A stretch of 64,000 nucleotides of DNA from NCBI GenBank assembly GCA_965112735.1, contig OZ218951.1:1-64000 (forward strand), written 5' to 3'. Both the position numbers and the translations under genes were made by a program. The DNA comes from Phaeosaccion multiseriatum. Taxonomy: Eukaryota; Protista; Ochrophyta, other classes. This document shows, in pieces, positions 1 through 43,586 of this stretch (its first letter is position 1; each line of letters begins with the position of its first letter). The notes under the pieces are model-generated. The model made no database searches, was not told the origin of the DNA, and worked only from the letters and a program-made list of their open reading frames with translations.

Positions 1-180
1 CCTAACCCTGGCCCTAACCCTAGCCCTGGCCCTGGCCTGGCCTGGCCCTGGCCTGGCCTGGCCTGGCCTGGCCCTAACCCTGGCCCTAACCCTAACCCTG
101 GCCTGGCCTGGCCTGGCCCTAACCCTGGCCTAACCCTAACCCTGGCCTGGCCTAACCCTAACCCTGGCCTAACCCTAACC
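1..180 (+). repeat. Telomeric CCCTAA repeats intermixed with CCCTGG/CCTGG variants (left chromosome end)
   Basis: cctaaccctggccctaaccctagccctgg...; C-rich strand on +, the orientation expected at a left chromosome end with TTAGGG telomeres. Confidence 0.85.
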
Positions 181-4287: not shown

Positions 4288-4352
4288 CTAAACCCTAACC
4301 CTGGCCTGGCCTGGCCTGGCCTGGCCTACCCTAACCCTAACCCTAACCCTAA
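4288..4352 (+). repeat. Proximal telomeric CCCTAA units at the telomere/satellite junction
   Basis: Four CCCTAA units at 4329-4352 run directly into GGCCTCGGAC of the satellite. Confidence 0.9.
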
Positions 4353-9605: not shown

Positions 9606-9911
9606 TGTAAGAAGGCTTCCTTTTGCTAGGCTGGCAGCTATCCACTGAATATTCACGGGGGTAGCTGCCAGCCTAGCAAAAGGAAGCCTTCTTACATGCC
9701 TGTCAGTTAAGGTCGATCCTTCCCCCCCCTCCGAAAACTCCTCCGAAAACCTTGGGGGGCTAACTACCTAGGATTTCTCCCACACCGAGCCCGTTACCTC
9801 GAATTTCAGTGTCATGCCCAACTTTCGCCCTCGGAAATTTTCTCACCATCCTCAAAATCGAACCCCGTCTGGGCATGTAAGAAGGCTTCCTTTTGCTTAG
9901 GGTTAGGGTTA
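9606..9911. mobile_element. 306-bp non-coding fold-back insert with TTAGGG tail, flanked by GTTCT direct repeats
   Basis: 35-bp inverted arms at 9606-9640 and 9662-9696; 26-bp inverted pair at 9675-9700 and 9872-9897; TTAGGGTTAGGGTTA at 9897-9911; GTTCT at 9601-9605 and 9912-9916. Structure is seen directly; mobility is inferred. Confidence 0.55.
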
Positions 9912-15900: not shown

Positions 15901-17133
15901 GTCCTGAGGCCTCGGACGAAGTGGTTCTCCACTGGTTCTCGAGTCCTGAGGCCTCGGACGAAGTGGTTCTCCACTGGTTCTCGAGTCCTGAGGCCTCGGA
16001 CGAAGTGGTTCTCCACTGGTTCTCGAGTCCTGAGGCCTCGGACGAAGTGGTTCTCCACTGGTTCTCGAGTCCTGAGGCTGCGGACGAAGTGGTTCTCCAC
16101 TGGTTCTCGAGTCCTGAGGCCTCGGACGAAGTGGTTCTCAAGTGGTTCTCGAGTCCTGAGGCCTTGGACGAAGTGGTTCTCCACTGGTTCTCGAGTCCTA
16201 AGGCCGCGGACGAAGTGGTTCTCCACTGGTTCTCGAGTCCTGAGGCCTCGGACGAAGTGGTTCTCAAGTGGTTCTCGAGTCATGAGGCCTCGGACGAAGT
16301 GGTTCTCCACTGGTTCTCGAGTCCTGAGGCCGCGGACGAAGTGGTTCTCCACTGGTTCTCGAGTCCTGAGGCCTCGGACGAAGTGGTTCTCAAGTGGTTC
16401 TCGAGTCCTGAGGCCTCGGACGAAGTGGTTCTCAAGTGGTTCTCGAGTCCTGAGGCCTCGGACAAAGTGGTTCTCCACTGGTTCTCGAGTCCTAAGACCT
16501 CGGACGAAGTGGTTCTCCACTGGTTCTCGAGTCCTGAGGCCGCGGACGAAGTGGTTCTCCACTGGTTCTCGAGTCCTGAGGCCTCGGACGAAGTGGTTCT
16601 CGACTGGGTCTCGAGTCCTGAGGGCTTGGACGAAGTGGTTCTCCACTGGTTTTCGAGTCCTGAGGCCTCGGACGAAGTGGTTCTCCACTGGTTCTCGAGT
16701 CCTGAGGCCGCGGACGAAGTGGTTCTCCACTGGTTCTGGAGTCCTGAGGCCTCGGACGAAGTGGTTCTCCACTGGTTCTCGAGTCCTAAGGCCGCGGACG
16801 AAGTGGTTCTCCACTGGTTCTCGAGTCCTGAGGCCTCGGACGAAGTGGTTCTCAACTGGTCCTCGAGTCATGAGGCCTCGGACGAAGTGGTTCTCCACTG
16901 GTTCTCGAGTCCTGAGGCCGCGGACGAAGTGGTTCTCCACTGGTTCTCGAGTCCTGAGGCCTCGGACGAAGTGGTTCTCAAGTGGTTCTCGAGTCCTGAG
17001 GCCTCGGACGAAGTGGTTCTCAAGTGGTTCTCGAGTCCTGAGGCCTCGGACAAAGTGGTTCTCCACTGGTTCTCGAGTCCTGAGGCCGCGGACGAAGTGG
17101 TTCTCCACTGGTTCTCGAGTCCTGAGGCCTCGG
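9912..17133. repeat. 42-bp subtelomeric satellite, proximal block (~170 copies)
   Basis: Same 42-bp unit and orientation as the distal block; ends at ...cctgaggcctcgg near 17133. Confidence 0.97.
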
Positions 17134-17325: not shown

Positions 17326-18595
17326 TCATTGATGAAGGGCCTGGTGAGCTCTCATCATGGTCAAGACGAGAGTCGACCCGTTCCAGCTTGAGTTGCTGTG
17401 CCTGGCTTCTTGCGCATTCAGAATCTGCTGGAAGCACCTCTCAGCCCGCGGACTCGGCAGGTAGACGTCGTGTACCGGTGGCATTTCGTCAAAGAAGAGC
17501 CGCAGGAAGTAGCTCAACGCGGGAAGCAAATTCCTCGAGGCGAGAAAGTCTTCTGTAGAGAGGATTCGAGGTCGTGTGCCACCGGCACTCTCGACTGCCA
17601 GTTGGAGCGTCTCTGGTGCAATGGTAAAAGCCTCACACGCAGCGTTGTACACCGTCGGTGCTGTTGGTGTATCGCTGCTGCGCCTGCCAACTCCCGCACT
17701 TGCCACTCCCGGCTGTGTACTGAGCCGGACGATGACCTGCGACACCAAGTCAACCGGAGTGGCGTTCATAGCGTGCGTCACAGCCTCCCCGTGCTTGCTG
17801 GCCTGCACAATCATGGATGTAAACACGTCGCCGCGCATGGGGGCAAATCCTGTGGAGGTGTGCCCTGCGACGAGTGGGACTCTGTACACATTGACGGCCA
17901 GGCCCTCCTGCGCTGCCTGCGTGACGAGCTTCTCTGCTACCCACTGCGGGGTTTTGGGGGGAAACGAGACAAACAGCGAGAAGGTGTGAGCATAGCGTGA
18001 TAAGAGGGTAGACGGACGAGCAAGAGTAAGGCAGCGCTGCCTTTGATCGTACCTTGCTTTGGTAGTACCCGATCTGCTTGCCGAGCGCGCACCCCGAGGC
18101 AGGGGCTGCAGTCATGTCTCCCAAGGGCGCGTCGGCGGGCATCCTCCCGTCCTCGTTGACCATGTCCGGAGTAAGAACAGCTGTTGTGGAAACCATGTGC
18201 AGCGTCTTTAACGAGTTGGTAGCAGCGAAGCTGAGCACATGAAGAGTCCCCAGCACGTTCGGCGCGAACAGCTGTGCATAGCTCTTGGAGTAGCTCAGGA
18301 GAGCGGCCGAGTGGTAAACGAGAGTCACTGTGCTGGCCAGGCGCTGATACACTTCTTTGGAAAGCCCGAGAGTTGGAGAAGTGACGTTCCCCTCGTAGAC
18401 CATCAGCCTCGCTCTTTCCGACTCGCGTAGAGTAAGCTTGGCTTCTTTCAATCCGAACAGAGTGCGCTGCATGGCGTCCTTATCGTCCGAAGCGCGAACG
18501 ATGCAGTGCACAGTCGACTGAGGGTGAGCCTGCAGCAAGTCCACTAGCAGATGCCGCCCTACGAATCCTGTCGCGCCTGTGAGCAGTATGGACTC
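17326..18595 (-). other. Terminal thioester reductase (NAD_binding_4 / SDR) domain
   Basis: ILLTGATGFVG, VHCIVRA, VYHSAA, NVLGT, MVST, catalytic GYYQSKWVAE across the last intron, VYRVP. Confidence 0.92.
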
Positions 18596-21500
18596 TGCTA
18601 CTGGTGTGCTCAACCTTACACCTCCTGCTGATGCCTGCCGCGCCATTTCCCGTATCGTGGCGGCGATATCACTCGGCAGATACGCGTCCACCCAAAGATC
18701 TGGAGCTTCTCTCTTACCCACAAGATCCGCCTCGAACTCTCCGTCAGCGCCGTTGCGACTGTAGGCACTGCGCGACATACGCACCGCGGGCACCCCTTCG
18801 AGCAGCACATCATCCGTCTGCTGGAGCCCGGGACTAATGAGAGTTCCCGGAGACACGCCGCAATCACGGGGAAGAGACGCCGAGGCAGCAACAATGGATC
18901 CTGCCCCTACCGTCACCCTTTGGCCGACCCGAACCTTTTCAAATAGAATACAGCAGGTGGTGCTTTCCTCAACGTGAGCTGGAAGCGCCCTCCCTTCTTC
19001 CACACTTCCAGACACGCTGTAATCAAAGGGTAGAGACGCCGAGTCGCCTGCCCCCACTGTCGCCTTTCGTCCAAGGAGGACCTTCTCAAGCAGACTACAG
19101 CAATTGGTGCTTTCGGCACTGCCAGCTGAAAGCCCCCTCCCTCCATCCACATGCACGACTCGCCGGGCGTCGACCTCGCAGTCCCTATCCACAACGCTTC
19201 CTGCCCCCAAGTGCACCAAATCGAAGGTGGACAGGCCATCCGTTGCAAGCACCACCGCATTTTTGCCCACTTCAGCTCCCATGGCTCGTAACCACAAGGA
19301 GTGCGCTGCAGTGCCAGCGAGGCCGTTGACACCACTCTGTCTGGCTACCTGCGTGAAGCGGGTGCTGAACAAGTCTCTGTGGAACACCACGCCCCCGACG
19401 GCCGCGTAGCAACCTGCGCGAGCTCGGCCAACGACGCCCCACTTGAGCACCACAGCCCACACAATCATAGCCATGTTGAGTGACAAGAGAATCACAGGCG
19501 ACATGACCAGAGCCAGCCACCTACCCACCGCAGTCACAAGCCACTGGGCCAACAGGGTGCTCGCGTACACACTGGTGAATTGAAACAGAAGAATGGCAAC
19601 AGGGGCCACGATGGAGTACAACACGGTTCCCGCACCAGCCCCCCGCGCGAGTCCCCCACCCGCCCGAGGCTCCTGCTGCTGCTCATGCCGCTTGTGGAGC
19701 TTCACTCTTACCACTAGGTGGCCGCTGCGAAGAGTTCTGTGTCGCACCTTCGGATCGTAGGACGTCGATGACGACGCACACGTCAATGGGCCAACCACAG
19801 AGGTGTCGCAAAGCTCAGACCCCGGACACAGACAGGAGCCTGGTGCCGTCACCGCGCACGCTCCAATCCTGATTGTCCCTGTATATCCTTGCGCCCGGGT
19901 GGCGAAGCTCCCCGACGCCACAGAGTGAGGCCCCAGATCTAGCAAAGCAGGGTCCAGCACAGGGGAAGGAGCGCTCATTTTGGCAGTCCAGGCGACGCGA
20001 GCGCCCAGAGAACGAAGCCAGAGGACCATGCCCGGCCCTGCTGAGTGCAGAACCACGTACCGGGGGTACACCAGTCGCATCATCACGTCGACAGCGTGGA
20101 GCTCTTGCCTTGTGACGCTGCGGCCACTACTGCTGACGGCAGCAAGGGCTCCCAGGCATCGTTTCAGAGCGACGCTCATGACGGTCATACAGATGCCCGC
20201 AACTGAATAGGACAAGGCCAGAATCAGCATAGGCTTCGCCAGATACTGCTCCGTCGTCAGCTCCTTCAGCGGCGCGAGAGTGTCCACAAAACCAAGGGCG
20301 ATGGGAAGCAGCGGCACCAGCGCCAGATCGAAGGTGCCGACACATGCAGCCACGAGGTAGCCCACGTCAAGGGAGCGATAGTCCGGCACGTAGCGTCCAA
20401 GCTGAGGTACGTACGTGAAAAGGCCCCACGCTTTACTCATCTCCCCCCAGACAAAGTACGCGGGTATACTCGCGGCCGCCATGCAAACTGCGGCCAGCGC
20501 GAAGCCAACCACAGTCATCATGACGTCTTTCACGGTCGTAGCGGCAGGGTCATTCACACTGGGCCACAGGGAGCTGCTCCCCATTCTATCAGCATTGTCG
20601 TCGCACTGCTTGGCCGGAGAGCCCCCCCACTCTGTGCAAGGGGAAAGGAGCCCACACCGCCCGCTGACCACCGTGGACGGCCGCAAGCGCACCAATTCGC
20701 CCATGGTTGTGCCTCCAAACACCTGAGACGATGCCCCCAACACGCAATCTGCGCCAACGGTGATTTGCCGGAGAAGGAGATGCCGGTCCTCTATCACCGC
20801 AGGCCGAACCCGACAAAACTCCTCCACAGTGGACTGCCGCCCCAAGTGCACCAAGTCGAACTCCGATACCGACACCGAATGCAGGCGACACCCATGCCCA
20901 ATCTTTGCTCCGAGTGCGCGAAGCCACCATGTCCACACCACACTCCCATGCAGCGGCAGTCGCTGCAACGCAAAGTCCGTCACGCGATCCACAAAGAGCC
21001 AGCGGAAGTAGTACCCGCTATTGATGGGATAAGACCCCATCCGGTACCTGCCGATCACCACCCACTTGGTCAGCGTCACCACTGCCATCAGCAGAATAGC
21101 CCACGAGAGGAAAGCGAGAGGTACACAGGCCAGCGCAATCCATCTGCCCCACTTGTCTAGGACAATCGAGTCAAGGACGATGACAGCGGGCAGCGCAGAC
21201 GCGGCGACCAGCAGCGAGCTGTAAACCATCGCCACGATGCCCATGCAGAAGCTGACAATGTCGGAGGAGGACGAGCCAATGTAGTCAGCATCCTTGCCGT
21301 ACAGATCACGGTCACCATCTTCTCTCTCGTCAGCATCCCTGGCGTCCAGAGCACGGTAGCCCTCTCTCCTCTCATCCTCCCGCACAGCAGCGGCTTCGCT
21401 GGTGTCTGCTTTGGCCACCACGTCCACACCTCCATCGTCTTTTAAACGAACGAAAAGCCCCAGTATATGCCGCGCGATATCTGCCGGTGTCGGGTGTTCG

Positions 21501-24500
21501 ATCAAAATCGAAGGCGGTAGACTACAGCCGACCCACGCGGAGAGTCGGTTGACAATCTCCACCAAGGCCAACGAGTCCACACCGGCGTCCATCAGGAGGG
21601 TGGAATCATGAATCAGACCACCTTCGTCTCCAATGCAATGCTCCACAACCCGCTTCACCTTGCTCACGACCATTGCTTGACGCGCCACCGGTGGCAGGTT
21701 CAACAACTCCTCATGTAGCTCCGAATTTCCTTCTCCTGCTTTCAAATCTCCCTTTGCATAGCCCAAAAGCCCTTCGAGCATGGGAACACGCCCACCCCTC
21801 GTGGCCTTCCCATACTTGGCCCAGTCCATCCCAGGCAGGATGGACACATCGCCTAAAGACGCTGAAGAAGCTGACGACATCGCAGCAGCATCTAAGGCAG
21901 CCATACCCAGCTCAGCTGACACCGTGCCCACGCCCGCAAGCTCAAGCTGCTTTTGGACGGCACTGTCGATGTACCAAGGAAATGATCGGCGAGTCGAATA
22001 AAGCTCTAGATGCTCCGGCCCCGCTACTCTGTCCAGGGCTGCTCCAAACGACTCCTCGGAGCTCTTCCCGCGGGTGAGGGAAGATATCCACGACAGCCCC
22101 TCGCGACGCTCGCACTTGGCTCCCATGCTGCTCAGCACAGGGTTGGGGCCCACCTCAACGATGCTCAGGTCAGGCCCCCTCCCGTCTCCCATCCAGTGCT
22201 CCACCAGCGTGTGGATGCCTTCTGCGAACAGCACTGGCGACAGCATGTGTTGCACCCAATACGTCGCCTGCGTCACCTCCTCCGCTCTCACCACCTCACC
22301 CGTCACGTTGGACACCAGGGGAATGCGTGGGGCGCTCAATGACATCTGCTTCAGAACCTCCTCCAGCGCACGTACAGCGGGCTCCATCAGAGGAGAGTGG
22401 AAGGCGTGCGACACCTCCAGGGCCTTGCAGCCCACCCTATCTGCCGTGAGCTTCTCCACCACCTTGTCCACAGCGCTGCGAGCTCCAGAGATCACGCTCG
22501 CGCTCGGTCCATTCGACGACGCCAGCACCACCTCCCCTGCCACCCCCGCAGCGTCGATGCTTGCCAAAGTCGCCTCCTTGCCTGCCCTCACTGCGAACAT
22601 CACTCCTTTGCCCTCGGGGCAGGCCTGCATGGCGGCTCCTCTCTTGGCGGACAGCATCAGCCCGTCCTCCAGCGACATGACGCCGGCCACGCACGCCGCC
22701 ACTACCTCGCCCAGGCTGTGGCCCATCACCATGGACGGCTCCACGCCCTCCGACTTCCACAGCTCACACAGGGCGTACTCCAGCACAAACAGGCATGGCT
22801 GGCAGTAGCATGTCTCCTTCAGCAGCGCTTGTGCAGTCTCCTCCTCCTCTCCCCCGTCCTCAGTGGCGGCAGGGTACATGAGCTCCACCACAGACTTGTC
22901 CAGCCAAGCCCGCTCCATGAGCAGCGTACTGCACCGCTGCACGCACTCGCGGAACACGCCCTCCTTCTCGTACAGCTCCCTGCCCATGCCCACGTACTGC
23001 GAGCCCTGTCCAGTGAACAAGAACGTCACCGGCGATCTCTTCTTGCTTTGCTGCACATCAAGCTGCGGCAAGACCTCACCCCTCTCAACCAACGTTGGTC
23101 CGAAGCTGCTGAGCACTACATGGGCGTTGGCACCACCAGCACCGAAGGAACTGACTGCAGCGATACGTCGCTGCCCGTCCCTGGCACTCAGTGGCACCAT
23201 GGCAGACGGCAAAGTCACCGGAAAGCCATCCAAGCGCAGCTCCGGATTGAGCATCTTCATGTGGAGATTGGGGGGAGCAGATCCGTGCTGAAGGACCAGC
23301 AGAGCTTTGATGAGGCCAGCGATTCCGGACGCACCCTCTAGATGTCCGATATTGGTCTTCACCGCCCCAACCACTAGGGGCCGAGCTTCCTCGCGGCCGT
23401 GGCCATACACGGCTCTCAAAGCACTCATCTCGATGGGGTCGCCGAGAGACGTCCCGGTGCCGTGTGCCTCCACGTAATCAACCTCCAGACCGTTCAAGCC
23501 GGCCTCCGCCAGTGCCTGCTCCATCAGACGCTGCTGAGCAGTAGGGCTCGGGGCAGTGTAGCGCAAACTTCTCCCGTTGTGGTTCGCAGAGCAGCCATTG
23601 ACGACAGCAAGGATGTGGTCCCCATTGGCCTGTGCATCGTCCAGTCGCTTCAGCACCACGGCGCCGCAGCCCTCACCTCGAACATATCCGTTGGCCGCAG
23701 CGTCGAACGTCTTGCAGCGCCTGAAAATGAGGAATTGTGCGTTCGCAACAGTGAAGAACAGATAAGAGGTAGTCTATCAGCAACAGAGGCCTTTCAGACA
23801 GCTTGGGCGTTTTGATCTTGCTCTCATACCGGCCCCCAAGAACAAGCTCCCACCCACACAAACGAGACACGCACTTACCAGTCAAGACTCAGGAAACCAC
23901 CGTCGGCGAGGGTCTCGAACGTTTGTGTACCCAGCAGCAAGTTGACGCCTCCCACCACGGCGATGTCACACTTACCCAGCCGCAAGCTGCTGCAGGCCCC
24001 TTCCAGTGCCACCAAAGACGACGAGCAAGCCGTGTCGACACTTACGCTCGGCCCTCCGAGGCCCAGCACGTAAGACATCCGATTTGCTGGACTCGCATTG
24101 GAGATGCCCATGACGGAGTACACACCTTTGCTCGCATCGTCTACCACTGAGCCCCACTCGCTGCCGGACATACCCACGAACACACCGGTGTTGCTGCCAT
24201 GTAGTGTATCCTTGCGGTAGCCCGCCCTGTGCAGAGCCTCGTACCCCACCTCCAGCATGACGCGCTGATGAGGGTCCATGGCACCCGCCTCGGCCGCCGA
24301 GATGCCGAAGAATGTGTTGTCAAAAGCCTCCACCCCATCAATAAAGCCCCCTTGCCACTGCTTCTGACCCTCATCGGCCCAGCGACCAAGGGGGCTGGCT
24401 CCAATACAGTCTGTCCCTGCACAGAGCATATCCCAGAAGTCCTCCGGGTTCTTCACCCCTCCAGGGAAGCGACAGGCGACACCGACGACTGCCAGTGGCG

Positions 24501-27500
24501 CCCTTGACTCAGTGCGGTGCGCTTCAGCAGCGATCGCCGCAGAGCGACTGCCAGAGGGTTCCTCTATCTCTCCAAGCACCTCTGCTTCGATCCACACTGC
24601 CAGCGCCGCTACCGTGGGATATGCGAAGAGCACATCAGTGGTCACTACAACCCCGAAGCGAGCCTGTAGCTGGCCGCGCAGCTCCACTGTTGACAAAGAG
24701 TCAAGACCTGCTTCCATCAAAGGCGTGTTCGCGTCCAGCTCTTCGACACCCTCCCCAAGGAGGTCCTTGGCCATATCAAGCACCGCCAATCGCACTGATT
24801 GCTGTCGGTCGCCAGGGGGCAGTCTCAAGAGCGCCTCGCGCACTTCATTGTTGAGTTTGGTGTTGCTGGACGCACCTGCTGCTGTTGAGACAAGCCCTGA
24901 CAGCAGGGGCGATCTACGGGATGCCCCCAAGCTGCCTGCAAACCTGCCCCAGTCCATGCCAGGCAGGACAGCCACATCACCCACGGATGCTGACGACATC
25001 GCAGCCGCATCTAAGGCAGCCATGCCCAGCTCAGCTGACACCGTGCCCACACCCGCGAGCTCCAACTGCTTTTGAACGATATCGAGTTCAGCGGCCATAC
25101 CCACGGCAGCCCACGGCCCCCACTGCAATGACGTCCCTGCGAGCCCGAGGTGTCGCCTGTGCCGCATCAGCCCATCCACAGCCGCATTCGCCGCAGCGTA
25201 GTTGGCCTGTCCAGCGTTCCCCAGTACTCCGGCCATGGATGTGAAGCAAAAGAAAAAGTCAAGGCCAGAAGTGCGCCCCTCCTCCTTCGCCCAAGCCAAC
25301 GAGAGCTCATGTAAGTTCACCGCCCCCTGCACCTTGGGTCGGAAGACGTTCGTCACGCTCTCCGCCGTCTGCTCTCCCATCAGCATATCATCCAGCACCC
25401 CGGCAGCATGCACCACACCGCGTACAGGGGGGAGCAAAGGCAGGACGCACCCCAGGCAAGTCCGAAGTGCCTCAGTATCAGCAACATCACAAGTAGGAGT
25501 ATGGATCAGCTCCACCTTGTTCCGAAGCTGCTGCCACTGTTCTGTCATGCTCTCGGCGACCTTCCCACTCCTCGACAGCAGCACCAAGTGACGAGCGCCC
25601 CTCGACGCGAGGTGCTGGGCCGTCACGAGGCCGAGAGCTCCCAGACCGCCGCTGATGACGTACGTGCCATCGGACACCACTGGCACACCATACGAGGGGT
25701 TGGTCAGCACCACCTTGCCGATGTGCTTCGCTTGGCTCATAAGTGCCATGGCCTTCTGAGTATCCTCCCTCATGTCAAAGGGTATGGTCCGTAAGGGCTT
25801 CACATGGCCAGACATGCAGTCATCAGCCAGATGCTGCAGCTCGTCGCTTATCCAGCCCGGCTCACCCGCGGAGAAGTCAGACTCAATCATGTTATCCAGT
25901 GCCAGCAGGTCGTACCTCACATCGGGCCGGGCGGTGCGCATCTGCTCGTGACTCCACACGCCTCGCTTGCCAAGCTCGACGAATATACCACCCTCATGTA
26001 GCATGTCCAATGAGAAGGGAATGTAATTCTCGCTCAGAGAGTTGAGCACCACATCGACCTTCATCTCACCCATGGACTGCTTGAACGCCTCTGCGTCTCT
26101 TGAAGACGCAATGTGCTCCACTCCCAAGCTCCGGAGGAAGTCATGCTTCACAGCAGCACCGGCAGTGACGTACACCTCTGCGCCGACCCGCTGAGCATAC
26201 TGTACGGCAGCAAGGCCCACACCGCCGGATGCGGCGTGAATCAGAACCTTCTCTCCAGCCTTGAGGCCCTCAAGGGCCTTCATCACGGTGAGGAACACGG
26301 TGGGAAGTGCAGCGGCCTGCTCGAAGCTCAGTACGGCCGGCATCACGGCCAGACACACATCACTCGTCGTCGTATGACTGCGCAAACACCCTCCGTCCGC
26401 AAAGCCAAACACAGCGTCGCCGACACGGAAGCGCGAGCTCCCTCCCACACTGATCACCTCGCCGGCAAACTCGAAGCAGGGATTGCCAGGGTCGCCAGGG
26501 TACATGTCCAGCACATTCAGCACGTCTCGGAAGTTCAGCCCAACGGCCCTCACCGCCACCTCTACGGAGCTACCAGCTGCTGGGTCGAGGGACTGATGCT
26601 TACCAACGCTCGTATCGTCACGCAGGGCGAAAGCGTTCGCAATGCTGCCTCTTGCCTTCAAGTCAAGCGCGAAGGGAAGCCGCAGGGGCTGATGTACAAG
26701 CTGAGGCGTCCAGCACTGCCCATCGCGTACCCGCAAATCTTCTGAGGTGGGAGTGAAGGCCAAGCCCAAGGCAAGCTCGCTGTCTGAGGGCTTCTTGTCG
26801 CTCAGGTCCACCACACCAACCTGCATGGAAGGGTGCTCCATCCTCGCAGTCCTCACCAAACCTGTCACCCAGCTGTCACGCCAGTCCTTGCCGCTTTGGA
26901 CGCCTCTCGTCAAAATCGTCAGCGGCACACTCGACGCAGTGCACAGGCTCCTGAGAAGAGCCATCAGGGCGTAGGCCGCTCGTGCTTGGTGCCCCGCTTT
27001 TAAGTCTTGATCGTCATACCCAGAGATGAGAACGTACAAGACACGAGTCCACTCGTCCTCTCCAAGAAGAAGAGTACCATCATCCCAGGAGGCGTCCATC
27101 CCCCCATACTGAGTGTGTACGTGCACGTTCTCCGGAACACAGCGCCGCACTGCAGCAATGATTGAAATCTCTTCCTCCCTCTCGTCCTGTGGAATAACCA
27201 CCAGCCACTTCTCTGGCACCGCCGCATCGGCAGGGTCAGCATCACTACCAAGGGCCTCCTCCTGTGTAGACGGTTCAGCAACCTGCCACTCCAATGCGTA
27301 CATTGCACGGCGAACGGGGCTGACGCGCACAAAGCCCCTCGCCCGCTGCACGCGAAAGCCCCGCATCTCCACTAGCACCTCTTTGCTGTCGAAGTCTGCA
27401 ATCACCACGTCGAACTTTGCGCTGTCCGCCTCTGACTGAACCTCACTCAGCTTCGTGTGCACCCACACGTTCTTTCCTGTTATGGAGGCGGAAACGACCA

Positions 27501-33500: not shown

Positions 33501-36500
33501 CGAGAACCAGCCATTTCTGTCGCGCCGCCTCCTCAGTAGTGTGAGCATCAGGGGCCTCCTCCTGCCATTCCAGCGTGTACATTGCGCGACGAAGAGGGTT
33601 GACAGGCGCAAAGCCTCTCGCCCTCTGCAAGCGGAATCCACGCATCTGCACCAGAACCTGCCTACTCTCGTAATGGGCAATGCTGATGTCAAACTTGATG
33701 ATGTTGCCCCCTTTCTCCACTTCCGTGAGCCTTGTGTGCACCCATACTCTCTCTTCCGTAATCGGAGCAGAGACTACCACCTCGTCGAAGCCAACGGGCA
33801 AGAACGGAGCTCCACCACTCGAGTTGAAGAGCTGACTTCGGATTGCGCGGAAAATGGAGTGCGTTGCACTGTCGAGGACCGCAGGGTGTAGAACAAAACT
33901 CATTTCCTCCCACGGCTCGCAAAGCTCCGAGTCTAGGGCGCGGACGACCGCAAGCACCTCTCCGCTCTTTTCGTACATACGCGTGTTTCGCTTGAATCGA
34001 GGGCCGAAGCAGAAGTTGGCGTTGGCCATTATCACGTACACGTCACTGGACATGTCCTCCCCTACTCTCCCTTTGATACCCTCCACATCGAGCGTTTCAC
34101 GCGGCTCGGTTCGCTCCTTGACAGACACGTGGGCCATCCTCGCGGTGGTGCCACGGTCACCGTCAGCACCGCCGGAGAATTCCATGCCTCCATCTTTCCC
34201 GTGCAGAGCACTCAGGCCGTCACATACAATAGTGCTGCGGCCGTGCGATTGATCCGTACCGGGGTGCTGAAAACCCTCAATCTCCAGTGGAACCACAAAC
34301 CTGGCTCCTTGCAGGACTACCTGCTGCTCCACCCCGAGCTGTCTTCCTCCTAGAGCAGCGACGACGCCCACTTCAATGTATGTCACCCCCGGAATGATTA
34401 CCACATTGTTGACGGCATGGTCCTTGAGAAGATTCTTGAGGTGAGGGGAGAAGGGGCTGGCGAGCCGCATTCCGCCTCTCTCTTGGACCACCTCACCACT
34501 TGGCATAAACGCCAGCGGAGGCTTGTACCAAGGAAATGATCGGCGAGTCGGATAAAGCTCTAGATGCTCCGGCCCCGCTACTGTGTCCAGGGCTGCTCCA
34601 AACGACTCCTCGGAGCTCTTCTCGCGCGTGAGGGAAGAGATCCACGCCAGCCCCTCACAACGCTCGCACTTGGCTCCCATGCTGCTCAGCACAGGGTTGG
34701 GGCCCACCTCAACGATGCTCAGGTCAGCCCCCCTCCCGTCTCCCATCCAGTGCTCCACCACCGTGTGGATGCCTTCTACGAACAGCACTGGCGACAGCAT
34801 GTGTTGCACCCAATACGTCGCCTGCGTCACCTCCTCCGCTCTCACCACCTCACCCGTCACGTTGGACACCAGGGGAATGCGTGGGGCGCTCAATGACACC
34901 TGCCTCAGAACCTCCTCCAACGCACGTACAGCGGGCTCCATGAGAGGAGAGTGGAAGGCGTGCGAAACCTCCAGGGCCTTGCAGCCCACCCCATCTGCCG
35001 TGAGCTTCTCCACCACCTTGTCCACAGCGCTGCGAGCTCCAGAGATCACGCTCGCGCTCGGTCCATTCGACGATGCCAGCACCACCTCCCCTGCCCCCCC
35101 CGCAGCGTCGATGCTTGCCAAAGTCGCCTCCTTGCCTGCCCTCACTGCGAACATCACTCCTTTGCCCTCGGGGCAGGCCTGCATGGCGGCTCCTCTCTTG
35201 GCGGACAGCATCAGCCCGTCCTCCAGCGACATGACGCCGGCCACGCACGCCGCCACTACCTCGCCCAGACTGTGGCCCATCACCATGGACGGCTCCACGC
35301 CCTCCGACTTCCACAGCTCACACAGGGCGTACTCCAGCACAAACAGGCATGGCTGGCAGTAGCGTGTCTCCTTCAGCAGCGCTTGTGCAGTCTCCTCCTC
35401 CTCCTCCGCCTCCCCGTCCTCAGCGGCGGCAGGGTACATGAGCTCCACCACAGACTTGTCCAGCCAAGCCCGCTCCATGAGCAGCGTACTGCACCGCTGC
35501 ACGCACTCGCGGAACACGCCCTCCTTCTCGTACAGCTCTCTGCCCATGCCCACGTACTGCGAGCCCTGTCCAGTGAACACAAACGTCACCGGTGAACGCT
35601 TCTTGCTTTGCTGCACATCAAGCTGCGGCAAGACCTCACCCCTCTCAACCAACGTTGGTCCGAAGCTGCTGAGCAGTGCGTGGGCGTTGGTGCCTCCAAA
35701 TCCGAAGGAGCTCACCCCGACCACCACAGATCCATCGGAGTTGGTGGGTAAAGGGGTCATGGAAGATGGGAACAGGACCTCAATTCCCTCCATGTCGAGC
35801 TCTGGGTTTGGCTCGATGAAGTGAAGATTGGGTGGAGCGGTCTTGTGCTGCGCCATCAGCACAGCTTTTATGAGTCCGGCAATCCCTGCGGCACCCTCCA
35901 AGTGCCCGATGTTTGTCTTGAGCGCCCCTACAATCAAAGGCTTCGCTTCATCGCGGTCGTGGGCGAACACTCCTCTGAGAGCGCTCATCTCGATGGGGTC
36001 GCCGAGAGACGTGCCCGTGCCGTGGGCCTCGACGAAACTGACGTCGTTTGGAGATAGTCCGGCGTCGATCAAGGCGTCTGTGATGAGCTGCTTTTGAGCA
36101 CCAGGGTTTGGAGCCGTCATCCGCGCGGTGGGCCCATTATGGTTCACAGCCGAGCCTCGCAGGACAGCCAGCACCTCATCGTCGTTGGCAAGGGCGTCGT
36201 CTAGGCGCTTCACCACGATTGCTCCGCACCCCTCGCCTCTGACGTAGCCGTTGGCGGCCTTGTCAAATGTTTTACAGTGCCTTGAGAGTGAGGAAGGAAG
36301 GGGGAAACAGGGAAGATTTAGCTAAGAAGGCGGGAGGCGAAGGGGCGATTTAAGGTTCTCACTCTACCTCCCTCAACGAAACAGTGGTGTGCGTGACCAG
36401 GTGCCTACCGACTAGAATACTAGCTTCCACCTGTCGGGGTATCATACTCATTCACTTCCTCCCTCCCTCCATCCCTCCCTCCCTCCCTCCCTCCCTCCCT

Positions 36501-39500
36501 TCCCCCCTCACCCTCTCCCTCCCCTCCTTCCTTCCTCCCTACTCCCCCTCCAACGCACACTCACGCACTCACCAGTCTGGCGAGAGAAACCCTCCTGAGG
36601 AAAGGAGCTTGAAGGGCGCCTCGCTGAGAAGCAGGTTCACTCCACCGACCACAGCTGCGTCACACTTGCCCAATCGAAGGCTGCTGCAGGCGTTGTCCAG
36701 GGCGACCAAGGAAGAGGAGCACGCCGTGTCTACTGTTGAGCTCGGCCCCTTCAACCCCAGCGCGTAGGAAACTCGGTTGGCCAAATTCGACATGGAGGCT
36801 CCTGACGCCGCGTACACGCCCTCGCTCGCCTCGCCAGCTCCTTGGCTTGCTTTGGCCTGCAGCCAATCGCTTCCAGCGCAGCCGATGAAGACCCCTGTCT
36901 CGCTCTTGCGGAGACTGCGCTTGTCATAGCCTGCCCTGTGCAGCGCCTCGAAGGCCACCTCCAGCAGCACGCGCTGGTTGGGGTCCATGCTTTCCGCTTC
37001 CGCTGACGAAATGCCGAAGAAGGTGTTGTCGAAGAAGTGGACGCCCTCTATGAAGCCTCCTCGCCACTCCTTAGAGCCGCTTCCCCACCTGTCTGCTGGA
37101 GCTGTAGAGATGCAGTCAGATCCCGTGCAAAGCATGCTCCAGAAACCTTGGGGCGAAGTCACTCCTCCTGGAAAGCGGCACGCCATGCCCACCACCGCCA
37201 GCGGAGCTCGCACGCCTTGAGGCGAAGCCGAGGTGGGGCGCAAACCTCGCATTGGGTCTGTGGCAGCCCTCCCCATTACCTCGCCATCAAGCCAGCCCAC
37301 CAGCTCCGCCACGCTGGGGTACTCAAACAGCACATCGGCGGTGGCTGTAACCCCCAAGTCAGTTTGAAGGCGATTCCGCACCTCTACGAGTGCCATCGAA
37401 TCCAGGCCTGCCTCCATCAAGGGCACATTGTCGTCCAGCGGGGGCATGTCTGCATCAACACACTTCAGCACGGTCGCCTTGAGCGCTTCCAGGAGAGCAA
37501 CGCGTCGATCCTCTGGGGAGACAGCAGAGAGAGTCTCGCGCAGCTGTGAGAGGGCGTCTCCAGCTGGGGGCGGAGCAGACGCAGCACCCTCGTAATCATG
37601 TGGTGGTATTGCCCTCTTCGGGAGGGGAAACTCTCGCGACGAGGGGAACCCCTGCCAAGGGGTGCCCACTCTCTCTGCTGCGCCTTTGGGCCTCATGCCG
37701 CCATAGCTGCCCAAGATGACGTGGGCGTTGAAGCCGCCAACACCGTAGGAATTCACCCCTGCGAGCAGCGTCGAGCCGTCGGAGCAGTAGGAGGAGAGGG
37801 GCGTCCTTCGGGTGGGCAGCGTGACGGGCACGCCCTCCAGCTTCAGGTTGGGGTTGACCTCCTTCAGGTGTAGGTTGGCTGGGGCCTCTCGGTGTTGTAC
37901 TACCAAGATGGCCTTGATGAGCTGAGCCATCCCTGATGCCCCTTCCATGTGGCCTAGAGTAGTCTTGACAGTGCCCACTACAAGAGGGGAGGTATCAGGT
38001 CTGTTGGCGGTGAACGCTGCCTTGAGAGCGCCTAAGGAGTATCACGTGACGTGCGTGCGTGCGTGCGTGCGTGGGTGCGTGTGTGCGTGCGTGCGTGCGT
38101 GCGTGAGGGAGGGAGGGAGGGAGAGAGGGAGGGAGGGAGGGAGGGAGGGAGGGAGGGAGAGGGAGGAAGGAAAAGATCGAAGGAGGGAGGGAGGGAGGGA
38201 GGGAGGGAGGGAGGGAGGGAGGGAGGGAGGGAGGGAGGGAGGGAGGGAGGGAGGGAGGGAGGGAGGGAGGGAGGGAGGGAGGGAGGGAGGGAGGGAGGGA
38301 GGGAGGGAGGGAGGGAGGGAGGGAGGGAGGGAGGGAGGGAGGGAGGGAGGGAGGGAGGGAGGGAGGGAGGGAGGGAGTGAGGTATGTAGAGAAGGAGAGG
38401 GAGGAAGGAAAGGGTGGAAGGAGGGAGGAGGGAGGGAGAGACGAGGGGAGGGCACGAATAAGCTTTGTTTACTATGTCTCATCACAGCATCATTTTTCTA
38501 GTTGAGACGTAAGAGAGACATCACAATGATGGTCCAACACGAATGCCCCTCTTTGAACCCCCTTTGCCTCCTTCAACGTACCCAGCTCGATGGTGTCGCC
38601 CATGACCGTTCCCGTGGCGTGAGCCTCCACGTAGCCCACTTCTCTCCCCTCGCACCCTGCCTGCCGCAGGGCGCTCCTCGCCAAGCTCTCTTGGGCGGCT
38701 CCCTTGGGGGCAGACAGAGAACTGCTGACGCCATTGTGGCTGACAGCCGCTGCCTTGATGACGGCAAGGATGTTGTCTCCGTCCTTGATGGCGTCCGGCA
38801 GGGACTTCAGCACGACGGCCCCACTGCCCTCACTGCGCACGTAGCCGTCCCCGGCCGCGTCAAAGGACTTGCAGTACCTGAAGCAGGAGACGGGGCACAG
38901 GAAGCAGAGGGGGGGGGTGGGGGGGATCAGTGTCCAAGCAAGGGACCAGAGAGAAGAAAAAGGGCGCTATGGAAGGAAGAAAATATATGCAGCAAGAGCT
39001 TCAGGAATACACTCACCCTTCCTTCGACAGAAGTCCCGCACTGGCTAGGCCGCCAAAGCCTTGGTCATGGAGCAGCAGGTTGACCCCGCCAACGACGGCA
39101 GAGCTGCACTGCCTCAGTTTCAGACTGTTGTACGCGTTGCTGAGGGCCACTAGGGCCGACGAACACGCTGCGTCTATGCTTTCGCATGGACCTACAAGGC
39201 CGAGTGTTTGCGAAATGCGGCCAGCGAAACATGCTCTGCTTGCCCCTGCCAACGTGTAGGCGCTGAGAGAAACGCCATCCGCGCTCTCACGCAGCAAAGC
39301 GGGCCAGTCACTCCCTGCAGCGCCCACAAACACGCCAACTCGGTGACCTTCAAGCCTGCGTCGGCCCTCGTAGCCGGCTCTGTGCAGAGCCTCGTACGCC
39401 ACTTCGAGCATGATGCGCTGGTTGGGATCTTGGGTCTCCGCCTCGGCGGTGGACATGCCGAAGAATGCATTGTCGAACACTTCAACACCGTCGATGAAGC

Positions 39501-42500
39501 CACCTGATCGCATGACGGGGAGAGGAGGAGCGTCCTAAATGGGGTGAGTGGGGCACAGAGACGGGCAAAGAAGCGCCCAGCAAGGCTTCCATGCCCTCTA
39601 AGACTAACATTTGCAAGCCTCGTGGACACAGGGTAGAAACGCACCTCTCACTCCTGTTCCCAAGCCTCGCTCAAGGGGTGCATCGGTGACGCAGTCCTCT
39701 TCATTGCACAGCTTCGCCCAGAGCTCTTCCGGGCTGTTGCAGCCACCGGGGAACCGACAGGCCATCCCAATCACTGCAATATCACCGCTGCTACCGTCAG
39801 AAGAAGGGGCCCCAGGAATAGAGGGAGGCAGTCCGTCAACGGAAGCGTCGTCCTCCTCTCCTTCTCCGAACAGGACCGTCTCCAGGTGAGCTGCGAGTAG
39901 AGCAGGTGTCGGATAGTCAAAGAAGGCGTCGGCCCCAATCTCAGAATCCTTGTCGCTCCCGTCTTCAGTCTTCTCGCAGCCCAGAAAGTCCTCCAGCATC
40001 ACCGCCAGCTCGGCCATCATCACCGAGGTCATGCCCACCTCCATGAAGCGGTCGTCGGCGGTCAAATCTCCGTTATGCGTCATCTCTACGGCAAACTCGA
40101 GGAGCTGCTCCAAGATGATGGCCACCCTTGCCTCCCTATCGAGGCCCTCCATAGCACGCATGGCCAGACCGCCTTCTCCTCCTCCTTTCCCCTCCGGGAC
40201 ACCGCCTTCGACGAAGCAAGCCCTTTCCTCGGGAGCTGAGCACACGCTGGCAAGGTTCACAGGAGGAGAGTCCTGTCGGTTTAGGTTGGGGGAGAAAAGG
40301 GCATGACAAGTGGGGTGAGACTCGACGCAGAACCCTCAGCAGACGATTCCCTCACACAACGGCACGGATGAAAAGGGCTGTGAAGGGCAAGTACCAAAGC
40401 ACACAGGTTGAAGGGGGCAAAGGAAGGGAGAGATGGGCAAGAGGCCTCCACTCCCTTTCGCTCGCACCTGTGACATCGCAGTGCGGTTATCGATATCGAT
40501 GATCTCGTGCACCATGTGCAGCTCGCCAGCGTGAAGCGCCTGTCTCGTCGCCCGCCGTCGGATCTTGCCGCTCGTGGTTTTGGGGATGGTCTTCTGCTTG
40601 ATGGCCACAACCTTCGCCGCTCTGAGACCCAAGGAGGACGACAAGGCGGCTTGAGCAGCCTCCACCACTGCCTGGGCCTCGCCCTCTCGCCCTTGGCGGA
40701 TCTCGAACACCACCTCCAGCACACCGTCCCCTCCCGTCTCGTCGGAGGAGAAGGCCGCAATGCAGCCCTGCCGAATAGCGTCAGACGCTTCTTGCACGGC
40801 GAACTCGATGTCCTGCGGGTAGTGGTTGACCCCGTTGAAGATGATGAGGTCCTTGATGCGGCCGCAGATGTACAGCAGCCCCTCCTCCACAAAGCCCACG
40901 TCGCCCGTCCGCAGGTACTTGCAATTTGAGGAGAGGTCACTGCCATCGCTCCCCCCCGTTCCTTTGGGGAGTGCGAGTGCTGCGCCAAACGTCTCCTTCG
41001 ACAGCTCGGGCTTGCCCCAGTACCCGGCGGTGATACAGGGAGAGGAGACCCAAATCTCTCCCGTGGCTGCTGCTTCGCTGACCTCGGCCATGGTGTCGGG
41101 ATTGACAATTCGAATGTCCATAAAGTCTGCCCTCTCGCTCGGGGCGCCGACGCTGGTGAGGTCGGGGCGAGAAGGCGATCGATCGAGGACAGTGCTCCAG
41201 GAGACTGGGGAAAGTGTGCATTGTGGTGGGGAAGACGAGAGGACGAGTGCTTGAGCCTTTGGACCGATTCTTACACTGAGAGCGAATTAACTGCACCACC
41301 CCCTGTCCCTTCGCCTCGACCCGCCCCCCCTTCTGTGCAGACTTCTTACCTGACACTACGTGTTCAGCGAGCCCGTACGCAGCCGAGAACCACCTGTCGA
41401 CTCAGTGCACAAACCACAGAGAGACACAGCCATACACGGGAGAGGTATAAGGTTAGAGACGTCTCAGTGGCCAAGAAAGGGGGGGGGGGGGGCAGGGAGG
41501 ATGTCGTGACAAGTCTCTCGAGCTCAAGCGCAGTCATAGCTCTCCTACCACACACTCACTCACCCCTGCCGGAGGCCGAAAGGCAGGAAGGCCCCTTCGA
41601 ACCTCTCCACCGTCTCGGCCCGGATTGGCTCGGCTCCTGACGTCAGCGTGACCACGAGGGACAGATCCAGCTTGGGCTCTTTGCGAGTGCCGCGCACCTT
41701 GGCCATGTAGCGGGCGCAGAGGGCGTAGGCGAAGTCGGGGGCGACGGACCACTCCACGCGGTGCCGAGAGACGAGCTCCAGCCAGAGCAGGGGCCGCTTG
41801 ATGAAGCTCACGGGGGACATGTAATGCATAGTCATGCCCGTCAGGAAGGGGGTGAGGAGGCCGAGCACGAGACCCATGTCCTGAGAAGCACAGAAAGAGA
41901 AGGCAGGGCAGTGAGTGGGGCGCGAATGAGCAACAGCAAAAGGCAAGACGGAGGCGCAATGGAGAGTAGAGGGGTGTCCGGCCGCACATCGTTTCTACCC
42001 TTCCTCACGCTTGCTTGGCGCTTCGTTCCTGGCCGTCCGTTTCCACGTTTCTCCTCCCTTCATCTGTCCTGCCTCTACTTCCTCCCTCTCGCTCGCTCAC
42101 CTTCCCCCTATACACAAGTCAACTCACATGATACTGGGGCAACCACGAGAAGCCCGTTGTTGGCACATTATGGATCCGCTCACTTGGTGCAGCCCTCTGG
42201 GTAGGACCGCTGCTGCTCACTTCAGGCTGGTCTGATGAGGAGTGCGAGGGCCACAAGCGGCACATCCCCGTGGCGGGGTGGCAGCCGATGAGGTACACAT
42301 TGGCCATGAGCGCACCGAAGGTCACCATGACGCCCTTGGGGTCTCCGGTGGAGCCGCTGGTGTACTGCAAGAAGGCCAGGTCCTCTTCGGCCACGCTCAC
42401 CTCATCGAAACTCCTTGCTGACGAGGAGGACAATGAGGATGAAAAGAAGCTCTGAAACAGCCCCCCATTTGTAACCTTAAAGTCGAGGTCATCAGGCCAC

Positions 42501-43586
42501 AGCTTGCGGGAGTCCGAGAGTGGATTGACCTTGTCCATATTGCGCACAGCTGCGATGATGGAGTCGGTGAGGCACAGCACGGGCTTGCAGTCCTCCACGA
42601 TCTTGCTCATCTTTGGCAGAGACGTGGACAGGGGAGGAGCAGGCGGGTACACCATCACCGCCACCACGCCCGCTCTGAAGCAGCCCAGAAAGGCGGCGAA
42701 GAAATGCAGGCCCGGCCCGTAGCACAGCACCACCATGCTGCCCTTGGGCACGCCCCACTCCTCGCGCAGCATGTAGGCAATCTTGCCCGCCTGGTAACAA
42801 GAAAAAGGAAGTCAAGAGACTTGTCCGGTGGGTACTGGTGGGCGGGTGCAAGAAATATTTGACCCCTTTACACGATGGGCATCACCAGCCACAAGCAACC
42901 AAGGCTACGTCCGGCCGTAGCTAGTATGGAAGGGGCACAAAGAAGTCGTGAATTCTTTGTCTTCTCCTCCTTCTCGTCCCTCTTACCTCATCCCACATGG
43001 TCTTGAAGGTGTGCGTCTCCGCTTGCTTTCCCTTACCATCGTACCAGAAGGCGAAGGGCTTGGCGCCAAGCTCAGTCACAACCTGCCGCGCCCTTGCCAG
43101 CAGCAAAGGAGCGAGAGAGTGAGGAGGGGATGAACCTGTTCCCGCGGCCACCACTTTTGTTGCTTGTTGTTCTCGCAGCAGACATGCGTCCATTCTGCTG
43201 ATTCTGGGCAGCGCCTTCATCTCCTCCTCTCCCTCTTCGTCAGTGATACTGCTGTCGCCCCGCCGATGGCGGCCGCCCTTCTCGTCGCTCCTCTTCTTTC
43301 CGCTCCCGCCGCCACTGCCACCAGTGCCCATGCTGGCGCTAGTGCCAGCAGCTGGTGCCAGCAGTGGAACGGCGTGGGCGGGGAAGAGGAAAGCAGGCGC
43401 CGTCTGCTCCGCCTGGCTCTTCTTCAAACTGGTACTAGTGCCCGAGCCACCACCACCACCAACATTACCGTCGTCAGCTGGGCTGCCGCTGCTTGAAGAG
43501 GCTTCCTCCCCAGCACCATCAGGCCTCGTCCCTGCTCCCCCTCTTTGCCAAGGAGGAAACAGGCCTTCCATCTCCTTCTTCCTCAT
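17326..43586 (-). CDS. Giant modular type I PKS, ~7,918 aa, 13 exons: FAAL-ACP-KS-ACP-KS-AT-DH-ER-KR-ACP-KS-AT-DH-ER-KR-ACP-KS-AT-ACP-[Pls-like membrane domain]-thioester reductase
   Basis: Hand-spliced GT-AG exons: 43586-42987, 42790-42128, 41880-41564, 41393-41350, 41204-40468, 40272-39645, 39503-39017, 38877-38582, 38031-36573, 36280-30167, 30004-23879, 23720-18053, 17943-17326. Sum is 23,757 nt and all phases are compatible. Splicing restores split motifs (SWLPQYH|DMGL, SPDW|RCKTFD, GYYQSK|WVAEK). Start codon is uncertain. Confidence 0.9.
18785..21265 (-). other. Pls-like / TIGR02353-like membrane domain: hydrophobic helix pairs alternating with hexapeptide (LbH-like) segments
   Basis: Three WLRxLGAx(I/V) units (WWLRALGAKIG, LWLRSLGARV, LWLRAMGAEVG); KWVVIGRYRMGSYP and LKWGVVGRARAGCY; FDLVHLG twice; unit ends WGGSPA and LEGVPA; several ~20-aa hydrophobic stretches. 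Confidence 0.75.
21460..24500 (-). other. PKS module 4: KS-AT-(KR C-terminal remnant)-ACP (non-reducing)
   Basis: KS and AT motifs are intact; RRSFPWY is followed almost at once by VQKQLELAGVGTVSAELG; ACP LMDAGVDSLALVE. Confidence 0.9.
24590..30790 (-). other. PKS module 3: KS-AT-DH-ER-KR-ACP (fully reducing)
   Basis: Same motif set as module 2 (EVHGTGT, GHSLG, HAFHS, DHAVNNVVIIPG, LIHAASGGVG, GGLGALG/LDD/YAAAN, GLDSL). Confidence 0.93.
30880..37205 (-). other. PKS module 2: KS-AT-DH-ER-KR-ACP (fully reducing)
   Basis: DTACSSS, EAHGTGT, NIGHLEG; AT GHSLG and HAFHS (malonyl type); DH LKDHAVNNVVIIPG and HPAVLD; ER LIHAAAGGVG; KR GGLGALG, VLDD, QANYAAAN; ACP GLDSL. Confidence 0.93.
37290..40120 (-). 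other. PKS loading ACP plus module 1 (KS-ACP; no AT, no reductive domains)
   Basis: ACP FMEVGMTSVMMAEL; KS IAVIGMACRFPGG, IDAACSS, EAHATGT, LGHMEGASG, VNSYGVGG; short linker; ACP LMEAGLDSMALVE. No GHSxG AT motif between KS and ACP. Confidence 0.85.
38050..38377. repeat. (GCGT)n and (GAGG)n microsatellites in PKS intron 8
   Basis: Direct reading; inside intron 38581-38032; gives spurious GGRE/PPSL ORFs. Confidence 0.95.
40520..43130 (-). other. PKS domain: fatty acyl-AMP ligase (FAAL) loading domain
   Basis: LAFLQYTSGSTGDPKGV, SWLPQYHDMGL, YGLAEHVV (44-nt micro-exon 41393-41350), GEIWVSSP, YLRTGDVGF, GRIKDLIIFNGVNHYPQDIE, IPKTTSGKIRR. Confidence 0.92.

Follow-up and report, generated by a model that had tools for sequence, protein, structure and literature searches.

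A fatty acyl-AMP ligase-primed modular polyketide synthase of Phaeosaccion multiseriatum with a Pls-like membrane domain before a terminal thioester reductase: a candidate for reductive product release at the membrane

The DNA stretch analyzed here (the window) comprises positions 1–64,000 of contig OZ218951.1 from Phaeosaccion multiseriatum (GCA_965112735.1) and contains a single giant gene on the (−) strand (17326–43586). The gene encodes a modular polyketide synthase (PKS) which starts with a fatty acyl-AMP ligase (FAAL) and carries a membrane domain of the Pls/PosA type between its last acyl carrier protein (ACP) and a terminal thioester reductase (R). Judged from the sequence and a predicted structural model, we regard the protein as a membrane-anchored, FAAL-primed modular PKS resembling a fatty acid synthase (FAS), which may release its product reductively at the membrane surface. 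This is the best reading we can offer, and it is a tentative one, held with slightly less than even confidence. Full-text literature searches brought up no report of a Pls-type domain in a PKS, which is in agreement with the initial annotation of this DNA, where no characterized PKS was known to have such a domain between the last ACP and a reductase.

In the splice model the gene is composed of 12 exons and 11 introns, and the coding sequence of 23,739 nt corresponds to 7,912 amino acids. From 5' to 3' on the (−) strand the exons are located at 43586–42987, 42790–42128, 41880–41564, 41275–40468, 40227–39645, 39503–39017, 38877–38582, 38031–36573, 36280–30167, 30004–23879, 23720–18053 and 17943–17326. 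The start ATG is at 43586, the stop codon occupies 17326–17328, and the spliced translation contains no internal stop. All 11 introns are canonical GT-AG introns of 109–550 nt. Splice sites were set by frame continuity, GT-AG ends, the protein guides P0113, P0179 and P0249 and Pfam profile coordinates, and the peptides at the junctions agree with the consensus of ketosynthase (KS) and reductase domains. The unspliced (−) strand offers three open reading frames of approximately 2,000 codons each and about ten shorter ones, with the PKS domains in a consistent order. An open frame of 23.7 kb with intact catalytic motifs cannot be of chance origin, and the explanation by chance open reading frames was ruled out on these grounds. 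The initial annotation had arrived at one frame of about 7,918 amino acids in 13 exons; the single frame is retained in our splice model, with exon number and length corrected. Long microsatellites, (GAGG)n and (CCTC)n, are located inside introns 7 and 8 (38105–38438 and 36458–36552).

The fusion of the membrane domain to the PKS and to the reductase is independent of the splice prediction, as one unbroken exon of 5,668 nt (23720–18053) encodes the C-terminal part of KS4, the acyltransferase (AT) AT4, ACP4, the membrane domain in its full length and also the N-terminal half of R. A stop codon ahead of the membrane domain, which the initial annotation had named as an observation that would speak against its proposal, was looked for and is not present in this exon.

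The membrane domain itself (18674–21343, (−) strand; approximately 890 amino acids) was characterized by hidden Markov model (HMM) searches, hydropathy, an AlphaFold2 (AF2) model, fold matches and a tree. It matches TIGR02353, the terminal domain of Pls and PosA, with an E-value of 2.5e-50 and 171.6 bits, and positions 20–440 out of the 695 profile positions are covered best. The curated equivalog cut-off of TIGR02353 is 423.1 bits, and the membrane domain scores below it. By its sequence it is clearly a homologue of TIGR02353, yet not a member of the equivalog. The assignment as a Pls-like domain made in the initial annotation stands, both at the level of the HMM and at the level of the predicted fold, where its size had been given as about 830 amino acids.

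In the hydropathy profile, paired hydrophobic segments alternate with soluble parts rich in hexapeptide repeats. The AF2 model calculated from 102 aligned homologues (pLDDT 78.9, pTM 0.86) predicts a pseudo-trimeric domain with three repeats, C1 (21274–20594), C2 (20533–19694) and C3 (19657–18764; all (−) strand), each of them consisting of two long helices followed by a left-handed beta-helix. Foldseek superposed residues 621–1330 of PosA on residues 31–857 of the domain (E 2.5e-31, TM 0.68), and ESM Atlas clusters named Pls/PosA match the model at TM 0.70–0.74. Among solved structures the fold search returned only hexapeptide acyltransferases, which align to single repeats, and the sequence search gave weak hexapeptide matches only; a solved structure of the Pls type was not found among the deposited structures. 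A partial match (TM 0.42–0.47) was obtained for a Streptophyta cluster of the ESM Atlas that combines a catalase domain with hexapeptide repeats, and this match is probably due to the beta-helix alone. Between helices 3 and 4 lies a loop of approximately 50 residues which is specific to the R-linked clade described below. Repeat C3 further contains an internal duplication of about 35 residues (approximately 19000–19200) with two copies of a motif ending in ...CC.L.EKV..G...TVGAG, and this duplication coincides with the sole long low-confidence stretch of the AF2 model.

An exhaustive HMMER search among 1.84 billion cluster representatives resulted in 1,528 matches, none of them above 32% identity. 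Most of these are A-T-Pls proteins of approximately 1,320 amino acids, and all three of their repeats match the first repeat of the Phaeosaccion domain only. A small set of matches is collinear across the full membrane domain, and in every one of these the domain is followed by a thioester reductase. The set includes P0075 (Prorocentrum cordatum/Polarella glacialis, C-A-T-Pls-like-R), P0096 (Symbiodinium pilosum), P0086 from a EukProt transcriptome, and P0059/P0151, P0125, P0011/P0152 and P0142 from metagenomes. In a maximum-likelihood tree our domain is placed in a clade of eight (99% SH-aLRT) in which 7 out of the 7 other members are linked to R. This clade is nested in a 16-member group (100%) that stands apart from 86 classical A-T-Pls domains; the branches are long, so that the inner branching order should be read with caution. 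The chytrid protein P0072 (Cladochytrium tenue) possesses R as well, takes a looser position and falls outside the 99% clade. Two PKS proteins of the 16-member group, P0085 (Stygiella incarcerata) and P0113 (metagenome), end in the Pls-like domain and lack R. The R domain of the Phaeosaccion protein shares 32–37% identity with that of the named R-linked members (34–37% for the Pls-R clade), and 28% with that of P0125.

The architecture, which the initial annotation had put forward as possibly undescribed, is not unique: together with R, the Pls-like domain forms a conserved unit which also occurs in metagenomic eukaryotes and in dinoflagellate proteins of the C-A-T and A-T types, and in one metagenomic gene from an unrelated eukaryote it is preceded by a FAAL-PKS front as well. 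This gene, P0151/L001, lies on a 416-kb contig (ENA ERZ25071330) of 40% GC with the eukaryotic neighbor domains PH, YEATS and reverse transcriptase. P0151 and the FAAL exons just upstream of it read FAAL-ACP-KS-AT-flavin monooxygenase-DH...ACP-Pls-like-R (DH, dehydratase). The Phaeosaccion protein aligns to L001 in one stretch from ACP4 to R (E 5e-76), and the shared part is 24% identical. Two eukaryotic genomes that differ greatly thus share the Pls-like-R ending, and the FAAL-PKS front as well. The flavin monooxygenase between AT and DH (within L001 10001–20791; Lys/Orn-oxygenase-like) is an unusual in-line tailoring domain.

A further hint towards the function of the domain arises from the motifs it lacks. 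If residues are numbered along the 890-aa domain, the columns E455, F/A/D 475–478, F/G/N 498–501, R570 and HLFEDR 790–795 are 95–100% identical among the 86 classical A-T-Pls domains. At these positions of repeats 2 and 3 the Phaeosaccion protein and the R-linked clade carry various other residues, and an HMM built from the 86 classical domains leaves the entire third beta-helix of the clade unaligned. Repeat 1 keeps K93, W94, G98, R114, W115, G145 and D163, and within the clade Y100, S109, D119, R120, R153, E161, E185 and C200 are conserved in addition. In the clade alignment no histidine was found to be conserved among the R-linked domains. The motif alignments are at 20–28% identity, which leaves single columns uncertain, and the overall pattern is consistent across two methods. 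By these comparisons the membrane domain lies outside the classical polymerase branch, in a separate eukaryotic clade. Condensation or polymerization at the membrane, which the initial annotation had suggested, is not favored by this pattern, as the highly conserved residues of repeats 2 and 3 are lost and the repeat-1 motifs alone are kept.

The terminal reductase (17329–18601, (−) strand) is recognized by Pfam NAD_binding_4 in both of its exons and by TIGR01746 (E 2e-40); the TIGR01746 score of 139.2 bits compares to a curated cut-off of 213, and the scanned exon holds the N-terminal half of R only. The NADPH motif GATGFVG and the catalytic YYQSK are kept, and the last intron follows directly after YYQSK, joining it to WVAEK. 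A non-reducing, Dieckmann-type terminal domain was considered and ruled out, since R still has the glycine motif as well as both residues of YxxxK, Tyr and Lys.

Upstream of the membrane domain, Pfam and NCBIfam give the order FAAL-ACP0, KS1-ACP1, two modules KS-AT-DH-ER-KR-ACP (ER, enoyl reductase; KR, ketoreductase) and KS4-AT4-ACP4, followed by the membrane domain and R. Every domain named in the initial annotation was recovered on one frame of the (−) strand, in the claimed order. The protein begins with an extension of approximately 150 amino acids (43137–43586, from the translation), which is of low complexity and rich in G, S and E. It has no match in Pfam, and no hydrophobic signal is seen in the translation of these first 150 residues; the assignment of the start codon to the first ATG is uncertain. 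The probable FAAL (40471–43124, exons 1–4) was recognized by Pfam AMP-binding and AMP-dom_DIP2-like and by tblastn guides. The top NCBIfam matches of the ligase are FAAL families (PRK12476, E 1.3e-45, and FadD32, E 9.5e-43, for the largest piece), with scores under the cut-offs in a scan of the exons one by one. Directly after the FAAL follows the loading carrier ACP0 (39811–40113; Pfam PP-binding) with its serine in GMTSV, and the conserved serine is present in five ACPs.

Module 1 (37286–39732) consists of KS1 and ACP1, as determined by Pfam and by an alignment of the four KS domains, and according to Pfam it has neither an AT nor reducing domains. The Cys-His-His triad is present in KS1 (DAACSS, HATGT, TLGH) as well as in KS2–4 (DTACSS, HGTGT, NIGH). 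Modules 2 (30835–37204; Pfam and motifs) and 3 (24586–30798; Pfam and module alignment) are both KS-AT-DH-ER-KR-ACP modules, and the DH histidine is intact in HAVNNVVIIPG. A sequence search with module 2 gave matches of about 35% identity only, most of them bacterial. The three ATs of modules 2–4 contain GHSLG and HAFH, the malonyl-type signature. Modules 2 and 3 are 78% identical overall in the module alignment, and approximately 200 amino acids of their ATs are 100% identical. These identical stretches are located at 34300–35000 (module 2) and 28000–28700 (module 3), and gene conversion within the gene is probably behind them. Module 4 (21458–24504; Pfam) is a KS-AT-ACP module without DH-ER-KR. 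It aligns to modules 2 and 3 over KS-AT and ACP only, which looks like a clean loss of DH-ER-KR, and due to this absence the chain would retain a beta-keto group. An intron is found at the identical codon in all four KS domains (39017/38877, 36573/36280, 30167/30004 and 23879/23720). The peptide at this position reads EGYCK in KS1 and DWHCK or DWRCK in KS2–4, where the split codon is Trp; the usual KS consensus has Gly there, like KS1.

Starting from the domain order, the intact catalytic motifs, the predicted fold of the membrane domain and its clade, we propose the following scheme, in which all chemistry is transferred from PKS logic, from the mechanism of Pls (PMC9205021) and from the precedent of CpFAS1 (PMC2995488). 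The FAAL would adenylate a free, probably long-chain, fatty acid and load it onto ACP0. KS1–KS4 could then add three malonyl units, or four if a neighboring AT charges ACP1. The units from modules 2 and 3 would be fully reduced, and the last unit would remain in the beta-keto state. The three helix hairpins of the Pls-like domain could provide six membrane helices, and because of the even number of crossings ACP4, the three beta-helices and R should all share one side of the membrane, presumably the cytosolic face. On that face the chain on ACP4 would be offered to two partners, the Pls-like domain and R. Pls links the thioester on its carrier to a free acceptor (PMC9205021); the terminal R of CpFAS1 acts on very-long-chain acyl thioesters (PMC2995488). 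As R possesses every catalytic motif and the Pls-like domain lacks most of the classical ones, reductive release is favored: using NAD(P)H, R would convert the ACP4 thioester into an aldehyde or alcohol, and the Pls-like domain may serve as a membrane dock and as a hand-off site which passes the hydrophobic product into or across the bilayer. Repeat 1 could possibly represent one remaining acyl-transfer site.

Several observations weigh against this scheme. The loss of motifs was read from alignments at the low identity given above, and the clade could have evolved an active site of another kind. The strong conservation of repeat 1 among the clade members hints at more than an anchoring role. 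A beta-keto thioester would be an unusual substrate for a releasing reductase, and the number of extensions is uncertain with module 1 lacking an AT. The topology was deduced from helix pairs and not from coordinates, and the hydropathy profile contains a seventh hydrophobic segment inside the loop between helices 3 and 4.

The conservation of repeat 1 also bears on the main rival explanation, which we consider possible and rather unlikely, namely that the Pls-like domain is the true off-loading enzyme. Its pseudo-trimer of beta-helices would move the acyl chain from ACP4 to a membrane-located acceptor with an amine or hydroxyl group (for instance a lipid head group or a wall precursor, or else a fatty alcohol made by R, in the last case leading to a wax ester); R would then supply the acceptor or tailor the product. 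This would be in line with classical Pls and PosA domains, in which the thioester on the carrier is linked to an acceptor that diffuses freely (PMC9205021, PMC10522769). Among solved structures, O- and N-acyltransferases of the hexapeptide type come closest in fold. The residues conserved in repeat 1 of the R-linked clade include the charged E161, D163, E185, R153 and R180, and with P0085 and P0113 there are PKS proteins which end in the Pls-like domain and do without R. However, the classical invariant motifs of repeats 2 and 3 are gone, among them the only conserved histidine motif, and the clade shows no conserved histidine. An intact R is always present, which speaks for reductive release.

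Going beyond the single protein, ACP-Pls-like-R could represent a dedicated, ancient eukaryotic release module in which the reductive off-loading of a very-long-chain oxygenated acyl chain is coupled to its insertion into the membrane, its passage or its esterification. We put this forward as a speculation with a small probability.

The possibility must also be addressed that the gene is a silent or decaying subtelomeric paralogue with a frame that is intact because the copy is young, which we regard as improbable. The location of the gene would fit such an interpretation. Its end at 17326 is less than 200 bp away from a satellite with a 42-bp unit (4348–17133; 12.8 kb, 302 copies, 91% matches), and as the satellite runs to the telomere, this is the last gene before the chromosome end. 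The terminal part of the window (1–4330) consists of CCCTAA telomere repeats which are at first interspersed with a (CCTGG)n/(GCCTG)n satellite and then give way to it; this satellite has approximately 80% GC and no A on the forward strand. The 42-bp satellite has no stop codons in several frames, which leads to long spurious open reading frames on both strands in this region. On the other side of the gene, no Pfam match was obtained for the ten largest open reading frames of 44–64 kb, and no cluster partner (phosphopantetheinyl transferase, transporter or tailoring gene) is therefore visible beside the gene.

Paralogues are indicated by sequencing reads. Four public runs from one sample contain the sequence, and with their even intergenic depth they behave as DNA, so that they inform on paralogues and not on splicing; an RNA run containing the sequence was not found among the public runs. 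The depth over 42845–44440 is even, with about 110, 60, 58 and 32 in the four runs, and it rises over the exons from 42844 down to 38445 to roughly 10–70 times the flanking depth (1,000–8,000 compared to ~110), with much lower values in bins dominated by introns. The FAAL-ACP-KS1 exons are present in tens of copies which are 95–99% alike. Exon 1 and the region upstream of it are found at single-copy depth, and this copy may have a locus-specific 5' end. About half of the read contigs aligned there are 95–99% identical to the window and the rest more than 99%, and at several sites the base of the window is in the minority. Two read joints end 3–8 bases inside the predicted introns 41881–42127 and 42791–42986, and a third lies wholly within the intron 41276–41563. 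We take these joints not for introns but for traces of paralogues whose splice sites are conserved and whose intron interiors have diverged. The gene probably belongs to a recently expanded, partly subtelomeric gene family.

Against a silent copy stands the state of the gene itself, with no stop among its 7,912 codons, canonical sequences at every splice site and no loss of a catalytic motif. In addition, 12 out of the 24 exonic differences between copies are synonymous, which is above the neutral expectation of approximately one quarter; 16 more differences fall into the much shorter intronic part.

Still less probable in our view is a membrane-bound polymerase, in which the Pls-like domain would condense hydroxy- or keto-acyl products into a polyester or an algaenan-like wall polymer. 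The predicted fold does match the polymerases Pls and PosA. The domain, however, does not fall into the clade of classical polymerases and is without the motifs that are invariant there in repeats 2 and 3. An obvious nucleophile is not seen on the predicted chain and would have to be made by R or another enzyme, and we found no precedent for a reductase adjoining a polymerase. We give next to no weight to the assumption of two genes, a PKS ending at ACP4 and a separate Pls-like/reductase protein: P0011 was called as a stand-alone Pls-like-R protein on a 9-kb metagenomic contig, where it may be the last exon of a larger gene, and the two-gene assumption is contradicted by the stop-free single exon and frame that leads from the C-terminal part of KS4 into R and by the homologue on L001, which is collinear from ACP4 to R.

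At the end of assembly-line enzymes one normally finds a thioesterase, a reductase or a condensation-type domain. A conserved terminus formed by a Pls-type membrane domain and a reductase would be a release device without prior study, and it is found on PKS and nonribosomal peptide synthetase (NRPS)-like proteins. These come from dinoflagellates, stramenopile-type algae and uncultured protists, and a chytrid has a looser relative. The device could show how polyketide or fatty products of a very hydrophobic nature reach membranes or walls in such organisms, and it could reveal a role of the Pls fold outside polymerases. It also provides a concrete candidate for unknown steps in the synthesis of algal long-chain diols, keto-ols and resistant wall polymers. 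Should the speculation on a dedicated release module hold true, the expanded FAAL-PKS family of this stramenopile-type alga might represent the missing enzymology for long-chain keto-ols, diols, hydroxy acids or algaenan-type wall lipids.

The general plan of the protein is known from CpFAS1 and CpPKS1 of Cryptosporidium parvum. These share with the Phaeosaccion protein the priming by an acyl ligase and ACP, FAS-like modules with full reduction and, at the C-terminus, a thioester reductase using NAD(P)H, all in one giant polypeptide that extends a preformed fatty acid (PMC2995488). The initial annotation had drawn the same parallel, and acyl ligase/ACP loading, elongation modules and terminal reductase are all present. 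In contrast to CpFAS1, the Phaeosaccion gene has introns, a KS-ACP module without AT and a last module without DH-ER-KR. It also differs by the 890-aa, six-helix membrane domain between the last ACP and R, a position at which CpFAS1, to our knowledge, has no membrane domain.

Pls of Streptomyces albulus and PosA of Acinetobacter baumannii resemble the Phaeosaccion protein in possessing a C-terminal three-repeat domain directly after a carrier domain (PMC9205021, PMC10522769). In the predicted model of PosA each helix pair is followed by a beta-helix, an arrangement as in our model (PMC10522769). Unlike in Pls and PosA, the domain is preceded by the PKS part KS4-AT4-ACP4 instead of an amino-acid A-T pair and is followed by a reductase. 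It further differs from them in scoring below the TIGR02353 cut-off, in belonging to another clade and in the loss of the classical invariants of repeats 2 and 3, and the likeness does not imply a polymer.

In a stramenopile alga, the PKS-Clade II proteins of Nannochloropsis were described as AMP-PPT-KAS-AT-KAR with membrane helices and were proposed to provide 3-hydroxy fatty acids for long-chain diols and hydroxy acids (Balzano et al. 2019, PMC6872974). Like the Phaeosaccion protein, they are PKS proteins of a stramenopile alga which begin with an AMP ligase and are predicted to contain membrane helices, whereas no reductase is reported and homology to Pls is not mentioned (PMC6872974). Their layout equals that of P0113, which carries a Pls-like domain; word-seeded searches with P0113 returned no named Nannochloropsis protein.

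The order of a Pls-like domain followed by R is shared with dinoflagellate proteins, CAK0807952.1 (Prorocentrum/Polarella, C-A-T-Pls-like-R) and CAE7780214.1 (Symbiodinium pilosum), which belong to the same clade with 99% support, and on a looser branch with KAJ1556441.1 of Cladochytrium tenue. These dinoflagellate and chytrid proteins have an NRPS adenylation front, whereas the Phaeosaccion protein has a FAAL-PKS front with four KS domains. In Symbiodiniaceae NRPS_term_dom forms a large gene family without an assigned function (bioRxiv 10.64898/2026.09.08.749829). The metagenomic P0151/L001 differs from the Phaeosaccion protein in having one KS-AT module only, which contains a DH and, as an insertion, a flavin monooxygenase, and agrees with it in uniting FAAL, ACP, KS, AT...ACP, the Pls-like domain and R in one gene.

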